NCBI RefSeq assembly: GCF_003918875.1
Contig: NW_025764992.1
Location: forward strand, 992,001-1,056,000
DNA length: 64,000 nt
Reading direction: 5' to 3'
Origin: Haliotis rubra
Lineage: Eukaryota
Shown here: one piece after another, positions 1 through 14,255 of the stretch
Layout: each line of letters opens with the position of its first letter
Numbering within the stretch: the stretch's first letter is position 1
The notes under the pieces: generated by a model
The model's database searches: none
Told to the model about the DNA's origin: nothing
The model's input: the letters and a program-made list of their open reading frames with translations, nothing else
Position numbers and translations under genes: made by a program

Positions 1-499
1 TAATGAGACTCATGTTTCGGTTTGCTGCCGTACTTTATTATCAGCTGGTAATTGTTTATCGGACATATGACAGACAGACAGACAGGTTTTATTTCAGTAT
101 AAGGCCACTGACCAAAATTACATTTATATACACATGAAATAGATATACAGCATGATTTAATTATGATTTTTTTTGCAATAAGGCGTGTGACTTTAGAAGA
201 ATATAACACACATTCTGCAAAGTAGTTTTTCCAGTTGATTGAAGAAGAGCTTTTAGTATGTTCATCGTTGGATTTTGTAAATAGTATGGTTTTAGATGTG
301 TCTTCGTTTGTTCACTGTATGATGGGCACTAATAGCACATGGAGCTCGTTCTTGGGGTGTCCTCTCATTACGCAGATAGCCAGTTCGCAGACACCTTAAA
401 ACAACAACATTTACGGTTCAGTGAACAGATCATCTACTACCTGTTACCTACACATTATACTGCAATAGTCCAAATACAAATACAGGAACAAACTGAAGC

Positions 500-915
500 T
501 ATTATCCCATGTAATGCGGGGGGATATACTGGACGCCTCGTCCGTCCGTTATCATTTTGTTTCCGGAGCATTACTCATAAAACGTTCAATATTTTTCAAC
601 CAACTTAGTAGATATATCAAACAGAACCTAAAGTGGTGCCTTTTGCTATTTACAGATTTTTGGCATTTTTATTTTTCTTGGTTTCTATGGAAACGATTCG
701 GAGTTCGTCTCAAAAGGGAGAGGTGGGCTTCGTTTCCGGAGCACAACTCGAAAACCGTTCAATATCCTTCAACAGAACTTGGCAGAGATATGAGACAGAT
801 CTTGAAGTGGTGCCTTTTGCTATTTGCAGATTTTTGTCATTTTTATTTTTCTTGGTTTCCATGGAAACGTTTCGAACATAGTCTCAAAAGAGAGGGGTGA
901 GCTTCGTTTCCGGAA
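500..915. mobile_element. HINE/Helentron-like non-autonomous element fragment with about 175-bp internal tandem duplication
   Basis: Terminal hairpin tatccc...gggata followed by short (GTCC)n, then two diverged copies of a ~175-bp unit (about 575-740 and 750-915). Confidence 0.45.
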
Positions 916-1276
916 AAAAATCCAAGTTGGACTTTAAGTATTGTCAGTTGATTTGTTCTTTCGAATTTATGGGGCCATTTATCATTCAATCACAACATTG
1001 TTCTATTTACCCTCAATCAAACTTCTCAGTAACGAACCTGTTTCAGGTTCACCCTGTTCTACTCACTAGAAAGTGGGAGATAAGCGTTCTTGGTTACGGA
1101 AATGGGCGAGTGGTGACGTATGACCTCCAAGAGTCGCTATTCGGCTTGTCTCGGAATAACACCAGATGGTCACGAATGTGCTTCCCCCATTGCAAATTGT
1201 GGAATGATTAAAAACCGGAATCATGCATTGCAACACCCAATTTCTTTCAATGTGTTAAAACAAATGGTGTTTACAG

Positions 1277-1403
1277 GTATGTTGCTGTACTGTGCTGTGT
1301 TCGGAGTGATACTGGGCAGGCTTGGTGACAGCGGAAAACACATGCTCGGCTTCTTCACCACTCTCAATAACGTCACGATGAAAATGGTTAGCATTGTGAT
1401 GTG
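1277..1403 (+). CDS. SLC1A: SLC1 exon (TM4c-TM5): GMLLYCAVFGVILGRLGDSGKHMLGFFTTLNNVTMKMVSIVMW
   Basis: tttacag| acceptor, TG|gtacgt donor; similar to EAAT TM5. Confidence 0.9.
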
Positions 1404-4400
1404 GTACGTAGTTGTTTGGTACCTTCTTATATTACGCTTTGCTCATGGAGATGGAGTATTAGTAACTGACCCGTACGTACTGAGTGTGAAACTATGTCAA
1501 GGTGGGTCGCTCCTTTTGGGATTCGAACTAGCATTTAGGTCTCTTGACACCCCATCGCACTTCAGAATGATTCGTATATATAACCTCTTACGTGGGTTTT
1601 TCGTCCCAAAACAGGGATTGCTGCAGTCTCCTTCTCGAACAACTTTTTGTCGCTTTGATATGCAATAAAAGTAAATAGTTTACTTGATGTGGTCAAAGGT
1701 GAAAACTGTCAGATCAATCTTACAAAGCGTCGTGATTGAAACGACTGAAATGTTTAAGACGTGCATTCTGTCCATGCACTGTAAAACAATGCAATATCAG
1801 TGAACTGAATAGGTCTCTGTTAAGAACCCCTGTAACATGCATTTTAGTGGCTCCTCTTTTCTGGATATAAAAAATCTGGACTTAAAAATAACAAATACAA
1901 CAGAAGGTTTATTTGTTTGTTTTTTTACGCCGTACTCAGCAATATTCTACACAACAGGGATACAATGAAATACATATATCAAGTCAGCACGCTTATGGGT
2001 TGCTGAAGAACATTTCTAACCTGGCTCTCCACGTGTGTGTAAAACGTCTCCGATATGTCCATCGAAGTCGAGTTCTCTGTTTCAGGTTTTCTCCAGTTGG
2101 GATTTTATGTCTCATCCTGGGAAAGATTCTGGAGGTACAGGACCTGGCAGGGACGGCGCGTCATCTTGGGATCTACATGGTCACTGGTCTGGCAGGTGCC
2201 ATCATCCACATGTTCCTGGTCGTACCGCTGGTGTACTTTATAGTCACACGGAGAAACGCCTACCGAGTATTGCATGGAGTTGTACAAGCCCTGGTTACAG
2301 CGCTAGCCACGGAGTCCAGGTACGTGGAACGTTGAGCCATCATTACAAACACAAGTTGTTTTAAATGGACTGACTGACTGAGTTTTGGTTTTACGCCGCT
2401 TTTAGCAATATTCCAGCAACATCACGGCGGGGGACACCAGAAATGGGCTTCACACATTGTATCCATATGGGAATTCGAACCCGGGTCTTCGGCGTGACGA
2501 GCCAACGCTTTAACCACTAGGCTACCCCACCGCCCCTGTTTTAAATGGAAGTTTCGTGATCTCGATACAAACGTTTGTTACAGCTAATATAGAAAATGAG
2601 AAAATAAATGGAAAAAATAAATACACTCAATCGCCGTCGTGTCGAAGGGGTCTACGTAAATGGTTCCAGTTAACTAAGGTTCGACATAACCACAAAAAGA
2701 TGATTTAATAAGGAAAACACAGAGACCGAGTTTTTACTTCGAGACAACCGACAGTTTTTAATGAGACATTGACAAAATTTCAAATGGTCATATATTGTTC
2801 TCTGTGTATTCATATTGAAATGGCGGAATAACTGACTAAGTTCGAGCTCACATACTTGAAAACATGAAATGCCAGAAACTAACCAGACTGGATTGTTTCC
2901 CGAAACAGATTTCGTTCGGCAAAAAACGTCCAAAAAGTAAAAATAACTGACAATGGTGTATCCACAGCTCTGCTACACTGCCGGTGTCAATACGTTGCTG
3001 CGAGGAGAACTTGAAGGTCCACAAGACCATCACCCGCTTCGTTCTGCCTATTGGTGCTACCATCAACATGGATGGATCCGCTATGATCAATTGTATCAGT
3101 GCCGTTTATGTTGCCCAACTTAACGGTATAAATCTTGGGTTTGCTGACGTCTTAAATCTTTGGTAAGAACCCTGTTGCTTATACCGTGCTATTTCTTTTA
3201 ATTCAACGACATTATTTTACTATTTGTTCTGATTAAGGATTGTAAGAATATGAATATGAGAGAACGCACGGATTGACGGAACTTGGAACAGCATTTTCAT
3301 TACATCATTACTACAGCAAATTTGTTGATATATGAACCTACGACAGTAGGATCCTTGCACGCCAAAGGGAGGCAACTAAGTACTGGAAATATCGCATTAG
3401 AGCAATATGGATTTGATGGACTTGAGGATCATTTACGTTCTTCACAAATTCCAAATTCTGTGTATTCATTTATGTGGCTACTGCCTCCTCTTGTAGATGT
3501 TACCCCGAAGATCCGGTAACAATTAGTCTTCAACGGGATCGGGTGGTCAGGTTCGCTGACTTTGATGCTTATAAACGTTTCTCAATGGTCGATTCTCCTG
3601 ATGTCAGTCACTAGATTGTCTGGTCCTGGCTCGATTATTTTCAGATCGCCATCATATAGCTGGAATATAAACAAAAACAAACAAATCTCACAGACGTGCA
3701 AAGTGAGTGAGAACGGCACTATTTCATCCTTATGGTGACAGATCTGCTAAGGTCTTCATTGACCTTCAATGTCCAGTTGTACAATGGTCGACTGATAACA
3801 CTCAGACAACTGCCGCAAGTTATACCATTTACTACTGTGAACGTCCAAAACACAACCAGAATGTAATACCGCACTATTTGTTGTTAGTTACATTGTAGCC
3901 GCCTTCAACCTTGGCACTCCTTTTGGCCTTCATTTTTTGTTTATTTGTTGTTTTACGTCGCACTCAGCAATATTCCAGCTATATAGGGGAAGTCTGTAAA
4001 TAATGGAGTTTGAACCAGACAATCCAGTGATCAATAGCACGGGAATCAATCTAGTACTCAATTTAGAAACGATGACGTGTCAACCAATTCAGCGAACCTG
4101 GAGTCTGTAGCACCAATAAGACATCTATGGTGTAATCGCAGCTGGACATGACCTTGGTTTGTTGCAGCCTCCTCAACATCATGGCCAGTATTGGGATTAC
4201 TGGTGTCCCCGGCAGCGGCATCCCGACCCTGGTCATGATACTGACCTCGGCCGGTCTCCCCACACACGACATCCCCCTGCTCCTCGCCGTCGACTGGTTC
4301 ATGTAAGTAATGTTTGTTGTTGTTAAGGCAGCTGTACATAGCGTTATTCGACCTGTTACAGGACGGTTGATTCAGGAACAGACAAACTGACGGCTGGACA

Positions 4401-6138
4401 TATTGATCAACAACAAAGGGGAATGATGTCGCACGATTAGACAGAGTGACCTGATCACTATTGAAGTCAAGGGCATGGTTACAGACGATTAGACAGTGGC
4501 CTGATCACTACTGAAGGTCAAGGGCATGGTGACAGACGATTAGACAGTGGCCTGATCACTATTGAAGGTCTAGGGCATGGTGACACACGATTAGACAGAG
4601 TGACCTGATCACTATTGAAGGTCAAGGGCATGGTGACAGACGATTAGACAGTGGCCTGATCACTATTGAAGGTCAAGGGCATGGTGACAGACGATTAGAC
4701 AGTGGACCTGATCACTATTGAAGGTCTAGGGCATGGTGACACACGATTAGACAAAGTGACCTGATCACTATTGAAGGTCTAGGGCATGGTGACACACGAT
4801 TAGACAGTGACCTGATCACTATTGAAGGTCTAGAGCATGGTGACACACGATTAGACAGAGTGACCTGATCACTATTGAAGGTCTAGAGCATGGTGACACA
4901 CGATTAGACAGTGACCTGATTATTGAAGGTCTAGGGCATGGTGACACACGATTAGACAGTGACCTGATCACTATTGAAGGTCTAGGAGCATGGTGACACA
5001 CGATTAGACAGTGACCTGATCACTATTGAAGGTCTAGAGCATGGTGACACACGATTGTCTAGAGCATGGTGAGATTAGACAGTGACCAGATCATTATTGA
5101 AGGTCTAGAGCATGGTGACACACGATTTGAGACACTATTGAAGTGACCACGATTAGACAGGAGATCACTATTGATCACTATTGAAGGTCTAGGAGCATGG
5201 TGACACACGATTAGACAAAGTGACCTGATCACTATTGAAGGTCTAGGGCATGGTGACACACGATTAGACAGTGACCCGATCACTATTGAAGGTCTAGAGC
5301 ATGGTGACACACGATTAGACAGAGTGACCTGATCACTATTGAAGGTCTAGAGCATGGTGACACACGATTAGACAGAGTGACCTGATCCCTATTGAAGGTC
5401 TAGAGCATGGTGACACACGATTAGACAGAGTGACCAGATCACTATTGAAGGTCTAGAGCATGGTGACACACGATTAGACAAAGTGACCTGATCACTATTG
5501 AAGGTCTAGGGCACGGTGACACACGATTAGACAGAGTGACCTGGTCTCCACTGAAGGTCTACAGCATGGTGACACACGATTAGACAGAGTGACAAGATCT
5601 CCGCTGAAGATCTAGAGCATGGTGACACACGATTAGACAGAGCGACCCGATCTTCACTGGTGTACTACGGTAAATTTACGTGTGGTGTTTGGTGAGATTT
5701 TACACAGAACTTATAACATATTTTACATCGAAATACATTTGCAGGAATAGGATTGCTACAGTTGGAGTGCAAAAAGATATTACATAGAATCTTGATAATT
5801 AAGGAATATTTTACACCTATATACCTTTACATGAGTCGGACTGCAACGTATTTACACAGAATCTTGATGTTTAAAGACTAGTTTACATCGATATACATTT
5901 ACAGGTGTCGGATTGCAACAGATTGCAACAGATTTTACACAGAATCTAGATAATTCAAGAATATTTTACACTGATATACATTTACAGGAGTCGGACTGCA
6001 ACAGTCGTCAACGTGTGTGGGGACTGCATGGCTGCATCATGTGTCCATCATCTCCTGAAGCCATTCACTGATGACCAACCTCGGACTGATCGTGCACATG
6101 CTAACGGGTCTATTGTCCATGAATATGAAACTGTGTAG
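1277..6138 (+). CDS. SLC1A: SLC1-family (EAAT/ASCT-like) Na+-coupled transporter, 3' portion (5 exons; 5' exons outside window)
   Basis: Exons 1277-1403, 2086-2319, 2968-3162, 4168-4302 and 5988-6138 join in frame with GT-AG boundaries. They give ...VMWFSPVGIL...ATESSSATLP...RFVLPIGATINMDG...ASIG..GVPG...AVDWFMSRTATVVNVCGD...YETV*, i.e. the HP1 serine motif, TM7 NMDG, HP2 and TM8 of SLC1. Confidence 0.95.
2086..2319 (+). CDS. SLC1A: SLC1 exon (TM6 to HP1): FSPVGILCLILGKI...QALVTALATES
   Basis: tttcag| acceptor, AG|gtacgt donor, phases match neighbouring exons. Confidence 0.93.
2370..2536 (-). mobile_element. SINE family A (tRNA-derived, about 165 bp), full length
   Basis: A/B-box tRNA(Asp)-like head, (TCAG)n tail, 13-bp TSD tgttttaaatgga. 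Confidence 0.9.
2968..3162 (+). CDS. SLC1A: SLC1 exon (HP1b-TM7): SATLPVSIRCCEENLKVHKTITRFVLPIGATINMDGSAMINCISAVYVAQLNG...
   Basis: ccacag| acceptor, TG|gtaag donor; NMDG motif. Confidence 0.95.
3500..4100. mobile_element. Two degenerate SINE B fragments in opposite orientation (about 3500-3670 + and 3940-4100 -)
   Basis: Matches to family B body and tail. Confidence 0.65.
4168..4302 (+). CDS. SLC1A: SLC1 exon (HP2-TM8a): LLNIMASIGITGVPGSGIPTLVMILTSAGLPTHDIPLLLAVDWF
   Basis: ttgcag| acceptor, AT|gtaagt donor; AVDW motif. Absent from the ORF track; translated by hand. Confidence 0.93.
4430..5650. repeat. Minisatellite, 51-53-bp unit, about 23 copies, in the last SLC1 intron
   Basis: ttagacag(ag)tgacctgatcactattgaaggtctagagcatggtgacacacga. 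Confidence 0.95.
5696..6003 (+). repeat. Four diverged tandem copies (about 70-90 bp) of the SLC1 last acceptor and exon start
   Basis: tttacacagaatct...atacatttacag|GAGTCGGACTGCAAC repeated. Confidence 0.85.
5988..6138 (+). CDS. SLC1A: SLC1 terminal exon (TM8b and C-tail): SRTATVVNVCGDCMAASCVHHLLKPF...HEYETV*
   Basis: tttacag| acceptor; NVxGD motif; TAG at 6136-6138. Confidence 0.9.
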
Positions 6139-6617
6139 AGCAAAGAATTCACAGATCAATGTTTAATGCCAACGTTATTTGAGCGTTTCTCATGTATTGC
6201 GAATCATATCAGTACATTCTGTTATGTTGTCTTCTTCACAAATTACCAATCCACTTGAAGTAAATGAGCATATATAAGTGATGAGACGCCATGCATTGTC
6301 AGTTTTAATCTCATTACATAATATTTCGTATACTCCCCAGGGAGAAACTACATAACTGTGACGTGATGGTTTGGATAATGGGTGTTACGGTTTCCATGTG
6401 AAATCGAATGACTATTTTACAAATAGTGTGAGCAGGCACTCCCATACAAGCACAAGAAATGTGTGTTGTCTGTATATGGTGTTATATCTTGTCTGAAATG
6501 TTTGGCATTCTAAACATGCAACTGTTACGAAGTGATTTCCAAATTGAAACATCCAGAAATTAGTACGTACAGAACTGACTTTTGAAATCACTAAATGACG
6601 ACACAAGTTCTAAAATC

Positions 6618-8176: not shown

Positions 8177-9497
8177 CTCCATAAATCTTAGGAAACGGCC
8201 GTAAAATATCTCAAGCGTTTATGAATGTACTTGAAAATGAGATTCTTGTAAGAATATATAAATATATCGTGTGAGTGCACGTGTAACTAAGATACATACA
8301 TATATCCTATATACTATAGATAAATTGTCTTGACTGGAGACAGGGATGTAACTATATATACCAACAGAAACCGTAACCTGTGATCAATATTTAAAGGTCA
8401 ATAAAACAAATACAATTGCATTTATTCTAATATGAAATAATCAAGACTTTACATTTCGCGATTCACGATTTGTACGAGCATGTTCCAGCACAATGAGATC
8501 ACAAATGAAGGAAGAACACATCTCATTGTTAGCGACAATTGGAATGGTGTAAGCTACTGGGACGACATAGTTCGAGATCGTCATCTGCCTTAGTTTTGCA
8601 AACTTGCACCAGTATCCCCCACCAACATGCTGCACGTATTATTTCTCATGATCTCTTCCCCTTACAACATGACTGGGGCAAGATGGACCGAAGCCTACGA
8701 CAGGACCAGAACCACGCAAGCTCTGTTGAGATAATCTTCAATTGACATGAAGAAGAACATCCCTCATTATATTTCTGTTATCTGGCAACTTGGCAGAATC
8801 AACGCAAGGGGTTAGGGAGTTGGGGGATGGGGTGTGTCTGTTATTTCAATAACACGAAATTTACACCACTCCATGAATCACAGTTACTTTTTCTCACTAG
8901 TCTATACGGTCACCACCCCGAGAGCAAGGGCTGACGTTTTCACATCACTTTGTCGTCTGGCATAATCGTGTATAAACTTGAAAAATTGTATGTTTTGACA
9001 GAATTGAACTTTTTTCTTTCTGAGATTGCAAGAATTTAAGCAAATTCTTTGCATTTCTGAGAAGACACATTGTATTAGGTCTAATTACGTCTTATTAATA
9101 CATGGAAAACCCTTGATCGATTGTGTTTGGGCCTGTGGTTAATCATTGAGGCAGGAATGTGTGGTGAATACTCTAGGACAAGCAACGCATCTCTCTGTAC
9201 ATGGCTCTTTGAAATCCACAGGAACGGAGTCTTCCTTGGGGTTTAGAACCAAGCCAAAAGTTTATTCTACTGATAAATGGTTTGGGAAGACTTAAACCAC
9301 AAATGTGCCTTATTTGTGGCATAAGTTCTTACATTAAACAGTTAATGTTATCATGTTACAAGTTATTCCCACAAAATATAGGCTACATCTTGTGTTGTGG
9401 ACTGAACCATGACTGCTTACAAAGTACACTTTCAGACACGTAATACGTCCATGGTTCTGTACATATTGTTTCATATCTGTGTACCCATAGTTCTGTA

Positions 9498-9665
9498 GGG
9501 GCGGTGGGGTAGCCTAGTGGTTAAGGCGTTGGCTCGTCACGCCGAAGATCCGGGTTCGAATCCCCACATGGGTACAATGTGTGAAGCCCATTTCTGGTGT
9601 TCCCCCGCCGCGATGTAGCTGGAATATTGCTAAAAGCGGCGTAAAATCAAACTCAGTCAGTCAGT
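9498..9665 (+). mobile_element. SINE family A, full length
   Basis: GGTAGCCTAGTGG A box, GGTTCGAATCC B box, TSD catagttctgta. Confidence 0.9.
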
Positions 9666-10022
9666 CATAGTTCTGTACATATACGTCCAAAGATGTGACT
9701 CGATTGTTCTGTACATTCTGGTCCAGGTCCAGGTCCTAATAGTACTGTACATATTGATCCAAGTCTTTGTATATATGTACATTTGTAAATCAACGCTGAA
9801 CCTGACACTGCTACTTGCTTGGCCACAAGCAACCAAATTAAATCAGTCGGAGTAGGCAAGTGTCTAAAGTGTTAAATCGTCAGGCTGGAGATTCCCAAAA
9901 TGGGTACAACGTGTAAAGACCATTTCTGGTGGCGATCTTGCAGGAATGTAGATCAAAGCAGCCAACTCATTCACTTCAATCAAACAGTACATCCTGAACT
10001 GTCCTGATTTTCAACAGTACAA

Positions 10023-10725: not shown

Positions 10726-13069
10726 ATCCATACACGTGTTACACAAAATGCATGATAAAAACAGATGGAACACTTAGCAATAACATATTTTCAGGTCACC
10801 GAACATTTTGCATTCTTAAAAGTCATTCACTGAAGTCAAGTGTTTCCCTTAGGTGAAAAACAAGAGTTATTCCCCTTGAACAAAGACAATCCGTTATCTA
10901 ACTAAAAGACAACACATAAAAAGATGATTCTAAATATGGCGAGTTTACAAATGAAATTCAAAGTTAAAATGGATGATGTTTTGTATCTAAAATATATGTC
11001 AAAATAGAAGGTTAGTGCATTGACATGTGTTAAAACGGTATGAAACTTTGATTCTTCATTTTGAAAAAAGAGACAGATGACTAAACACCACAGAGTCTAT
11101 TTGTAATAAAAAAACATCCCACTGCCAGTCAAATGAAAAACAGCTTAATCACTTTAATTATTAAAATGGGATTTCAAAATCTATTTCAATCAAGCCAGTA
11201 TCACATCACACAGTTTGATATCCAAAATTAAGTTGTGACAAGAAAAGAGAGTTACGCCAACCAAATGACCATGCAATTCATCACTTCAGTGTTTTCCACG
11301 AAAAACAGTAAACATCCGAATCTACCAAGTGGGAGTTTTACAAATTAATATTACTACTAAAATAGAGTCAAAGACAACTTCTCTATCACTACAGTCAATC
11401 AGCATGTCATATTAACGGTTGCAATATGAGAGATGTGTTCCTTAACTTGTTTAAACAGTATAATTCCCCATATTTATGTTTAATACTGTCTTTCAGTCAA
11501 GTTATAAGTTACATTGTTGGCAGCACCAGGTGATGGAGCTGCAGCAGCAGCAGGTATGCACCAAGTCCATCAGCTCATCACCAGCATGTCGTATCTGTAC
11601 TCTAGTCAGAAAAGGTATCCTACAATTCATTAACTTTTACCTTTTGGGATACAAAGCATTTTGGCAAATTCTACAACACTCTACAGCTTAATAGCCACTT
11701 AAGAAAGCATTTTGGTAAGTGCTACAACAGGCCACTGACTAGAGTGAGTGAGTGAATGTCTAACACTGCACTTGGCAATATTCCTGCAAACAATCATGGC
11801 TGGACCATACAAAGAATCGGATGGTCACTATGACAACCATGTCACAGAGCCTACAAGATAGTCCTCAGGAGTTGACTTTTACAAGAATGAGATGCCCCCA
11901 ACATCCTCACCAGCATATTAATAACCTTTGTCAAGCCTGCATCCATCATCCAATTCTACATTTGTGTAATGTGTTTGTTTTTCATCCTAATTTAATGCCA
12001 GGGAACCACTTGCCAGCATATGCTTTTCATTCAGCCTAAATCAATGATAAAAGCATAAAACAAACAATATTTCATGTAGACCTCAATCAATTTTTAAGCT
12101 AATGTCCACCTAGTTTTAATTCTATAAGCATAATTAAAACCAGAATACAAAAATATTGAGAAAAAACAGAATCCATTTTCATTTTAACGGTTCCAAATTA
12201 TTCTTGTATACTGAAGTAATACTAATTGTGGAGAACTACAGCTACGTCTAATAAATTACACTTTCTAAAATACAAAAAATCCTTGCACTAACAAATCAAC
12301 AACATAATACTCGAGATGTCTGCCTCCATACAAAATACATCAGTATCTTACCATGATCAGAATCACCCATAATCACCACGTATTTGTCAAAAAATACACC
12401 AAGTATACAAACCATCTCATCATGTGCACAAGAGTACCATAACACAGCCCACATAATTTGAAACCTAATTATTCCAAAATCAATCTTTTTAACATTTCTT
12501 GAGTAACATTAATCTGAAAAAGATCTCCCCAATTTTCAAGTTTTTATTCACAGGATATAGTGACTTGAAAATTGGTCACAGTACAATCTGCTAGAATCTT
12601 CAAGCACTACCCCAGTTGGCACTACCAGTCGAGACAGTAGAGACCACTAGCAGATACTTGAGGCTATACTAAGACAATGATAATCCTAAACAAGATTGAT
12701 CAATTTCTGCATGTGAGACCTACAATCCTACAGCTTGTCCACTGCTCGTAAACAACAAAGTGTTGCCATGGCAATATTAGCATTATTAGTTTAACTTCAA
12801 ATGATTTTCCACATTTCTGTTTATAAGAATATAATGCATGTTTGTAAATACTGTTTCAGCTTCCATGGACTGTTCTGGCAGACTAGACCACTGGGTCAAG
12901 GGAGCTGCAAGGAGTATGCTAGTATACAGTATCACAGTGACTAGACCACTGGTCAAGGGAGCTGCAAGGAGTATACTAGTATACCATACCACAGTGACTT
13001 CAGAAAACACAGGTGTCATGCCTCTGTGATCTCAGGTAAGAACAGGTATGCAACCTTAGTGACTTTGTA

Positions 13070-14255
13070 CAACACAGGTGATACCTCAGTCAGATTTCAC
13101 CACACAGGTGTGATATCTCTGATTGCACAACACAGGTGTGATATCTCTGAGTGCACCACACAAGCGTAATACTTCAGATTGCACCCCACAGGTGTGATAC
13201 CTCTGATTGCACAACACAGGTGTGATATCACAGTCAGATTGCACCACACAGGTGTGATACCTGTTAGATTGCACCACACAGGTGTGATACCTCAGTTAGA
13301 TTGCACCACACAGGTGTCATACCTCAGTTAGATTGCACCACACAGGTGTGATACCTCTGATTGCACCACACAGGTGTGATACCTCAGTTAGATTGCACCA
13401 CACAGGTGTGATACCTGTTAGATTGCACCACACAGGTGTGATACCTCAGATTGCACCACACAGGTGTGATACCTCAGTTAGATTGCACCACACAGGTGTG
13501 ATACCTCTGATTGCACCACACAGGTGTGATACCTCAGTTAGATTGCACCACACAGGTGTGATACCTCAGTCAGATTGCACCACACAGGTGTGATATATCA
13601 GTCAGATTGCACCACACAGGTGTGATACCTCAGTCAGATTGCACCACACAGGTGTGATAACTTCAGTCAGATTGCACCACACAGGTGTGATACCTCAGTC
13701 AGATTGCACCACACAGGTGTGATACCTCAGTCAGATTGCACCACACAGGTGTGATACCTCAGTCAGATTGCACCACACAGGTGTGATACATCAGTCAGAT
13801 TGCACCACACAGGTGTGATATATCAGTCAGATTGCACCACACAGGTGTGATAGTCAGATTCAGGTGTGATACCTCAGTCAGATTGCACCACACAGGTGTG
13901 ATACCTCAGTCAGATTGCACCACACAGGTGTGATATATCAGTCAGATTGCACCACACAGGTGTGATATATCAGTCAGATTGCACCACACAGGTGTGATAC
14001 CTCAGTCAGATTGCACCACACAGGTGTGATACCTCAGTCAGATTGCACCACACAGGTGTGATACCTCAGTCAGATTGCACCACACAGGTGTGATACCTCA
14101 GTCAGATTGCACCACACAGGTGTGATACCTCAGTCAGATTGCACCACACAGGTGTGATACATCAGTCAGATTGCACCACACAGGTGTGATATATCAGTCA
14201 GATTGCACCACACAGGTGTGATATATCAGTTTCCTTGCACCACCCAGGTGTGTTA
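13070..14255. repeat. Minisatellite, about 32-bp unit, about 36 copies
   Basis: gattgcaccacacaggtgtgatacctcagtca. Confidence 0.95.

Follow-up and report, generated by a model that had tools for sequence, protein, structure and literature searches.

A conserved abalone SLC1 gene whose substrate pocket departs from those of the EAATs, ASCTs and DctA

We analysed a 64,000-nucleotide stretch of the Haliotis rubra genome (contig NW_025764992.1, positions 992,001 to 1,056,000, forward strand; called the window below), which holds the 3′ part of an eight-exon, 486-codon gene of the SLC1 transporter family, the codon count being that of the open reading frame (ORF) in its relatives. The encoded protein is an SLC1 member that does not carry the defining pocket residues of the EAATs, of the ASCTs, or of bacterial DctA and the mosquito DCTs. 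Its unusual signature is shared by four Haliotis species, and the gene belongs to a clade of divergent paralogues, all of which with a readable eighth transmembrane segment have lost the same aspartate. The reading that we prefer, with a chance we would put somewhat short of even, is that the gene encodes a Na+-dependent, H+/K+-independent carrier or exchanger of a small uncharged or zwitterionic substrate. A preliminary description of this stretch, made from its letters alone, had proposed a Na+-dependent, K+-independent carrier of a non-amino-acid or atypical substrate, or a mainly anion-conducting SLC1 protein; overall, that interpretation is partly supported.

Gene structure and pocket residues

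Positions 1-6600 of the plus strand were read and spliced by eye and then by script. Five exons bounded by AG and GT, spanning window positions 1277-6138, encode the last 279 residues of an SLC1 protein, from transmembrane segment (TM) 4c to the C-terminus, and three more coding exons fall 5′ of E1, before the window starts. The preliminary description had begun the gene at 2300, which is the end of E2; the part inside the window starts at 1277. The exons are as follows (HP, hairpin).

1277-1403, plus strand: E1, the fourth of eight coding exons; TM4c, (G)MLLYCAVFGVILG...IVMW; bounded by AG/GT; Pfam SDF profile positions 139-178
2086-2319, plus strand: E2; TM5, TM6 and HP1a; ends ...ALATES, with the Glu codon at 2312-2314; Pfam SDF 43.8 bits
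2968-3162, plus strand: E3; HP1b and TM7; NMDGSAMINC at 3065-3094; 75 bits against EAAT3 by phmmer; Pfam SDF 74.7 bits
4168-4302, plus strand: E4; HP2 ASIGITGVPGSG, with GVPGSG at 4202-4219, and the start of TM8, AVDWF, with the D440-equivalent codon at 4292-4294; Pfam SDF 36.9 bits
5988-6138, plus strand: E5, the last exon; the rest of TM8 (S-R-T-A-T-V-V-N-V-C-G-D) and the C-terminal tail; stop codon TAG

The TM8, TM7, HP1 and HP2 motifs quoted in the preliminary description are all present, in one frame that runs through the canonical splice sites of the five exons. HP1 reads A-T-E-SSS-ATLP, HP2 reads ASIGITGVPGSG, and TM8 reads AVDWF-M-SRTATVVNVCGD, with intron 4 splitting the Met codon; the motifs follow the SLC1 order of SSSxTLP in HP1, NMDG in TM7, GxPxxG in HP2 and N...GD in TM8. 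Within E5, the codons that matter below are Ser at 5989-5991 (D444), Ala at 5998-6000 (R447), Asn at 6010-6012 (N451) and Asp at 6022-6024 (D455).

Every test run agrees that the protein belongs to SLC1. E1 to E4 match consecutive positions of the Pfam profile PF00375 (SDF), and E2, E3 and E4, which cover profile positions 180-364 in order, each score above the gathering cut-off of 27.9 bits. E5 alone falls below the Pfam threshold and gave a weak match to ASCT1 (E = 0.09); it was identified because it is continuous with E4 and is matched in the orthologues. The AlphaFold2 model of the H. asinina orthologue has a predicted local distance difference test score (pLDDT) above 90 from HP1 to TM8, and its best Foldseek matches are EAAT2 and EAAT3 (49-51% identity, query-normalised TM-score ~0.7). 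No second NMDG or TM8-like motif was found in a six-frame motif scan of the 64 kb, and with a single TM8-like motif present, the alternative last exon with DRxR that the preliminary description had considered is therefore not hidden in the window; the last exon that RefSeq uses instead has no SLC1 similarity.

Residue equivalences were established by phmmer against the sequences of solved structures (PDB), counting from anchor positions, with the equivalence table of PMC3958442 (Table 2). Since residue 1 of E3 aligns to EAAT3 334 and GltPh 279, the HP1 Glu corresponds to EAAT3 S331 and GltPh R276. The last residue of E4 (F44) aligns to EAAT3 442 and ASCT1 454 and R2 of E5 aligns to ASCT1 R457, so the TM8 Ser stands at D444 and the Ala at R447 (ASCT1 T459). 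In EAAT3 numbering, which we use throughout, the window protein has Glu at S331, Ser at T370, Ile at Y373, Asn at E374, Ser at D444 and Ala at R447, and it keeps N366, M367, D368, D440, R445, T448, N451, D455 and the HP1 SSS. The replacements named in the preliminary description (D to S, R to A, YE to IN, and Glu at GltPh R276) thus all lay at correctly mapped positions. Its statement that the Na+-site residues are intact was likewise borne out: the Na1/Na3-site residues N366, D368, N451 and D455 are in the window, and TM3 YYI(A/T)ST (Y98/T101/T102) is found in an upstream exon of all four species.

Compared with the EAATs, the abalone protein has the same fold but a different pocket. It shares 42-51% identity, the Na+ sites, HP1 SSS, HP2 and R445 with EAAT1-5 and with the mollusc EAATs (Haliotis P0275/P0277, Aplysia P0285), whereas the Asp444 and Arg447 typical of EAATs are Ser and Ala, fixed in four Haliotis species, the Y373-E374 pair is Ile-Asn (Thr-Asn in H. 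asinina), T370 is Ser and S331 is Glu. Judging from these residues, neither binding of glutamate or aspartate nor H+/K+ coupling would be expected.

ASCT1 and ASCT2 (SLC1A4/5), the vertebrate exchangers of neutral amino acids that depend on Na+, resemble the abalone protein in TM7 and TM8. The residue at R447 is small and neutral in all three (Thr459 in ASCT1, Cys467 in ASCT2, Ala in abalone), an amide replaces Glu at E374, position 373 is not Tyr, and NMDG, N451 and D455 are common to both; TM8 reads R-T-T-T-V-V-N-V-E-G-D in ASCT1 and R-T-A-T-V-V-N-V-C-G-D in abalone. However, the ASCTs have Asp in TM8 where abalone has Ser, and Ser or Cys at S331 where abalone has Glu, and they are not the sister group of the abalone clade (approximately unbiased (AU) test, p=0.021). 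In the mosquito dicarboxylate transporters CuqDCT and AeaDCT and in bacterial DctA the TM8 Asp is neutralised too (Asn in CuqDCT, Ser in DctA, Ser in abalone), but CuqDCT and DctA retain R447 for the second carboxylate where abalone has Ala. CuqDCT further has Ala at the T448 position, which is Thr in abalone, and CuqDCT and DctA are phylogenetically distant from the abalone gene.

CuqDCT is the only published animal SLC1 protein with a change at D444, a residue otherwise described as strictly conserved in eukaryotes (PMC3737229). With the abalone clade and the Phallusia protein P0138, the statement that D444 is strictly conserved in eukaryotes except in the mosquito DCT no longer holds. P0138 (Phallusia mammillata CAB3266129.1), from an ascidian, has the canonical NMDGTALYE and a TM8 reading S-R-G-Q-G, and so lacks both the D444 Asp and the R447 Arg. 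No relevant paper on SLC1 pocket variants of abalones or other molluscs came up in a search of the literature; a metazoan survey preprint does not treat pocket residues.

Conservation among abalones and the Asp-less clade

Orthologue models were found in H. asinina (P0002), H. rufescens (P0151), H. rubra itself (P0374) and H. cracherodii (P0375). A full-library phmmer search with E3 placed two proteins well ahead of all others, one of them P0002, a 284-residue model that is 92% identical; P0151, P0374 and P0375 were recovered by word-index searches and cluster look-ups. Over its first 12 kb, the window matches the H. rubra locus in GCA_003918875.1 (contig QXJH01000109.1) at 100% identity, the offset being 13,289. 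When the exons were mapped onto the loci, all five window exons had equal lengths and AG/GT sites in H. asinina, H. rufescens and H. cracherodii, E5 being 151 nt with an AG acceptor in each. Together with the three upstream exons, the 486-codon ORF is uninterrupted in H. rufescens and H. cracherodii (1461 nt), and the gene of H. asinina is intact over the seven exons that its locus covers.

The ratio of non-synonymous to synonymous divergence (dN/dS, Nei-Gojobori) over the window exons was 0.139 for rubra/asinina, 0.175 for rubra/rufescens and 0.178 for asinina/rufescens, and 0.14-0.19 overall at dS of 0.26-0.56, with a non-synonymous share far under the neutral expectation (binomial p<1e-13). 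The ratio was lowest in the core (0.12-0.15), higher in the C-terminal tail (0.21-0.46), and 0.28-0.53 in the N-terminal exons, which include the variable glycosylated loop. On a shorter time scale, DNA contigs diverged by ~3-4% from the window differed at ten sites in E1-E2, the two exons that this count covers, and nine of these differences were synonymous and one non-synonymous (p=3e-5); in E2, the count was eight of eight synonymous. E331, S370, N374, S444 and A447 are identical in the four species, and position 373 is Ile in all but H. asinina, which has Thr. The gene is under purifying selection in the genus and its signature is fixed, and the unusual pocket is therefore a maintained state. 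Neither of the outcomes that the preliminary description had set against itself, a dN/dS near 1 or a Ser/Ala pair that varies among orthologues, was observed.

The window gene is one of several such genes in abalones. Tabulating the pocket residues over all fetched proteins showed one canonical abalone EAAT (D-R-I-R-T, NMDGTALYE) and a set of divergent paralogues, in every one of which with a readable TM8 the D444 residue is replaced (P0274 ends before TM8). Their TM8 signatures, given as the residues at 444 and 447, are G..R in three orthogroups (with Ala/Glu, Asn or Asp on HP1), A..Q and S..Q, M..V (with N-I-Y-N-D), and S..A in the window gene. All lack Y373-E374, having F, V, I or T followed by Q, Y, L or N, and all keep N366, M367, D368, D440, R445, N451 and D455. 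Each signature is stable between species. The Asp-less clade holds at least six Haliotis orthogroups, and only that of the window gene combines Ser444, Ala447 and Glu331.

In a maximum-likelihood tree, all 26 divergent sequences formed one clade (ultrafast bootstrap 100, Shimodaira-Hasegawa-like approximate likelihood ratio test (SH-aLRT) 99), which lies outside the canonical mollusc EAAT clade (99/98) and is separated from vertebrate EAAT1/3/4 and ASCT by a 99/97 branch. The stem of the window-gene orthogroup (100/100) measures 0.81, which only one other internal branch of the clade exceeds. The orthogroup has two G..R groups as its sister (95/88), and the S..A signature is therefore most simply read as derived from G..R. 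Forcing the abalone clade to join ASCT made the tree 20 log-likelihood units worse (AU p=0.021). The ASCT grouping being rejected, the ASCT-like features of TM7 and TM8 are therefore convergent. In a search with a profile of the clade, only Haliotis proteins scored above the canonical EAATs of many molluscs, except for two proteins of 739 and 788 residues, the latter with two canonical SLC1 repeats. The clade thus looks abalone-specific among the proteomes searched, in which other vetigastropods are barely sampled.

Two further abalone proteins, P0001 (H. rubra XP_046546859.1) and P0003, look chimeric, with two partial SLC1 repeats and no HP2; the annotation has probably fused paralogues that lie in tandem.

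Substrate, coupling and the competing explanations

Published work on EAATs offers a guide to what such a pocket might do. D444, R447 and N451 are specificity determinants (PMC12036983). The R447C mutation turns EAAT3 into a Na+-dependent Ser/Cys exchanger, and D444C/E and E374Q, like Y403F and E404D in EAAT2, give exchange-only proteins (PMC3958442; PMC12036983); the loss of each of Y373, E374, D444 and R447 has been tied by mutagenesis to exchange-only or neutral-substrate behaviour (PMC3958442 Tables 1-2; PMC12036983). The backbone oxygen of S331 binds the amino nitrogen of the substrate, the S331 hydroxyl shares a modelled cation site with D444 and T448, and in simulations R445 inserts between S331 and D444 (PMC3958442).

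On this basis, the abalone protein would retain binding of Na+ and of the substrate carboxylate, since N366, M367, D368, D440, N451, D455, the HP1 SSS and the TM3 Y/S/T residues are kept. With Ile in place of Y373, Asn in place of E374, and neither D444 nor R447 present, it would lack a proton acceptor as well as a K+-dependent return step, and this loss of H+/K+ coupling would leave either an obligatory Na+-dependent exchange of the ASCT kind or a K+-independent symport of the GltPh kind. The Ala at R447 and the Ser at T370 predict a distal pocket that is small and uncharged, which would make acidic amino acids and dicarboxylates unlikely ligands, and the substrate is probably something other than glutamate. 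A small zwitterion, such as a small neutral alpha-amino acid, might fit. Because S331 adjoins the alpha-amino site, the Glu on HP1 may replace the TM8 carboxylate and meet the amino group, the acid having moved from TM8 to HP1; alternatively, this Glu could form a pair with R445. Asp or Glu occupies the same HP1 position in two of the G..R groups, which would fit a moved acid.

The non-amino-acid carrier of the preliminary description can be given a more specific form: as the pocket has neither a carboxylate at D444 nor an Arg at R447, it would accept substrates that lack an alpha-amino group and a second acid, and Na+-dependent, K+-independent transport of lactate, pyruvate, glycolate or other hydroxy- and mono-carboxylates, or of an osmolyte, would follow. 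DctA with Ser and CuqDCT with Asn at the D444 position lend this idea some weight, as does the EAAT3 D444S/T448A double mutant, which gains succinate transport and loses K+-evoked current (PMC3737229). The Ser at D444 is moreover fixed in four species, and the Asp is lost throughout a clade in which several paralogue groups (G..R, with Ala or Asn on HP1) appear dicarboxylate-like. However, the EAAT3 single mutants D444S and D444N show no transport (PMC3737229), and the abalone gene retains T448, unlike the mosquito DCT. The fixed HP1 Glu, next to the amino-group site, would also add a negative charge that is unfavourable for an amino-less anion unless it were paired with R445. Such a substrate is, as far as the residues tell, not forced, since the HP1 Glu could supply the counter-charge for an amino group, and we consider a non-amino-acid carrier unlikely; between the two types of substrate, we slightly favour that of the small neutral amino acids over mono- or hydroxy-carboxylates. 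A third explanation, that the protein is mainly an anion channel or sensor, which keeps the Na+- and ligand-gated movements of HP2 together with the SLC1 chloride pathway but has little or no coupled flux, would draw on the uncoupled anion conductance of all SLC1 members studied so far, on a shift in EAAT3 D444S/T448A that is consistent with a larger chloride share (PMC3737229), and on R445 (the equivalent of EAAT1 R477), which is invariant in the clade. Nothing in the sequence points specifically to a larger conductance, the anion-path residues of TM1, TM2 and TM5 not having been examined, and six groups with different fixed pocket signatures better fit a diversification of substrate specificity; we regard a channel or sensor as highly improbable.

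Several observations weigh against our preferred reading of a Na+-dependent carrier or exchanger, and some of them would suit a non-functional or dying gene, at least in H. rubra a relic with poor expression, with the odd pocket a product of decay. All four RefSeq models are irregular. That of H. asinina is split at the intron between exon 3 and E1 into genes of 208 and 284 residues; those of H. rufescens and H. cracherodii omit exon 3 and E1, though both exons are intact there; and that of H. rubra (XP_046575058.1, P0374) is frame-shifted over the end of exon 2 and exon 3, omits E5 and joins E4 to an unrelated last exon at 12860-12944. The frame shift arises because exon 2 of the H. rubra assembly carries a 1-nt deletion 2.2 kb before the window start (L003 ~11060), its C-run counting four bases against five in H. 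rufescens and H. cracherodii, so that the exon has 210 nt in H. rubra and 211 nt in the other three species. The preliminary description had called the reading frame intact, which holds across the five window exons and fails in this upstream exon of the assembly. The deletion lies in a C homopolymer of a hybrid long-read assembly and may reflect a fault of that assembly; if it is real, the H. rubra copy would be a null allele, and a recent one, because the downstream exons are without signs of decay. Evidence from RNA was not found: no RNA run was listed, and the two runs that hold the locus, from one study, come from DNA, either that of a relative or that of a divergent individual, since they cover introns at 3-4% divergence. 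In the protein collection, no fragment spanning the E3/E4/E5 junctions exceeded 50% identity to the query (H. asinina residues 140-284), a result that is uninformative on expression. HP1 itself has Leu for the conserved Pro (SSSATLL) in H. rufescens and H. cracherodii. Not all Asp-less groups have Asp or Glu on HP1, the rest having N, A or S there, and the idea of a relocated acid takes as its basis residue positions from published structures and simulations.

The long stem of 0.81 and the N-terminal dN/dS of 0.53 between H. rubra and H. asinina would also agree with decay. Set against this are the absence of stops and frame-breaking indels over the 1461 nt of H. rufescens and H. cracherodii, splice sites kept in four species, dN/dS of 0.14-0.19 (p<1e-13) at dS as high as 0.56, the nine synonymous changes among the ten recent differences, and Na+-site and carboxylate-site residues that are all intact. 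We therefore judge a dying gene to be improbable.

The wider proposal that these data suggest, which we hold to be unlikely as a whole, is that abalones have an SLC1 subfamily of their own, with six or more conserved orthogroups, in which amino recognition by the TM8 Asp was lost or moved to HP1 while the distal pocket took on five different new forms, with the window gene (E331/S444/A447) representing a substrate class new to the family, a relocated-acid carrier of neutral amino acids or a carrier of mono- or hydroxy-carboxylates. If this were true, a plausible role would be to bring algal or dissolved organic solutes across epithelia, and the genes would offer a lead on how a farmed mollusc takes up solutes. 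The main interest lies in this six-fold, conserved natural rewiring of the SLC1 pocket more than in the single gene: at least six conserved abalone orthogroups break the D444 rule, each in its own fixed way, and amount to a natural mutagenesis series. They open tests of whether an HP1 acid can take over binding of the amino group, of how far the substrate range shifts when the Na+ machinery is kept, and of how K+-independent, ASCT-like coupling arose a second time.

Repeats, duplicated exon ends and neighbouring features

Three further features of the window are listed here (TRF, Tandem Repeats Finder).

5780-6004, plus strand: 83-bp tandem repeat of 2.9 copies (TRF), duplicating the E5 acceptor and the first ~20 nt of the exon
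4432-5652, no strand assigned: 53/104-bp minisatellite (TRF), filling most of intron 4
12860-12944, plus strand: alternative last exon of XP_046575058.1, (I)FHGLFWQTRPLGQGSCKEYASIQYHSD*, without SLC1 similarity (from the P0374 sequence, tblastn and coordinates)

The copies of the 83-bp repeat read N/S/C...A at the two pocket positions, and the preliminary description had cited them as evidence against a base-calling error. The duplicated starts do exist. The repeat is present in H. rubra, left as traces in H. asinina, and absent from H. rufescens and H. cracherodii; being limited to the H. rubra/H. asinina lineage, the duplicated starts therefore arose after the S/A state and lend it no independent support. 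It is the conservation of the signature across species that shows it not to be a base-calling error. The copies are potential decoy acceptors, whose use would reach stop codons.

Just before E1, an open frame (ISFNVLKQMVFTG) could have extended that exon in the 5′ direction; this candidate was ruled out by a stop in H. asinina and by the conserved AG at 1275-1276. Positions 1230-1276, beside the E1 acceptor, hold an apparent relic copy of the peptide at the exon 3/E1 junction, ISFNVL-KQMVFTG in H. rubra, and the same relic in H. asinina (L001 9940-10013) reads ITFNVLGVVVFF-stop-KKKK-MLFTG. It resembles the repeat before E5 in that both are partial duplications of the 5′ end of an exon at its own acceptor.

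A 4.6-copy relative of the intron-4 minisatellite occupies the same intron in H. asinina. Intron 2 contains, at 2368-2537, a highly repeated tRNA-like short interspersed nuclear element (SINE) of ~170 bp, which recurs at 9497-9666 and elsewhere; its depth reaches 10^6-10^7 in the DNA contig sets, where hundreds of contigs meet at its ends, and many of its copies have a (GAGT)n-like tract in front of them. More high-copy segments lie in intron 3 at 3428-4203, with a depth of 10^5-10^6 in both DNA runs, and one of them has a TTTACGCCGC...AATATTCCAGC core in common with the SINE at 2368.

The region of the alternative last exon (12705-13091) includes a tandem duplication, 12881-12942 and 12939-12999, of 92% identity, and is 80-90% conserved in H. 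asinina, where it also lies 3′ of the SLC1 gene. Further downstream, a phosphodiesterase gene stands on the opposite strand in both H. asinina and H. rubra, so that the neighbourhood is conserved; in the window it runs from ~17750 on, on the minus strand, its H. asinina counterpart matches PF00233, and the products have 1094-1103 residues.

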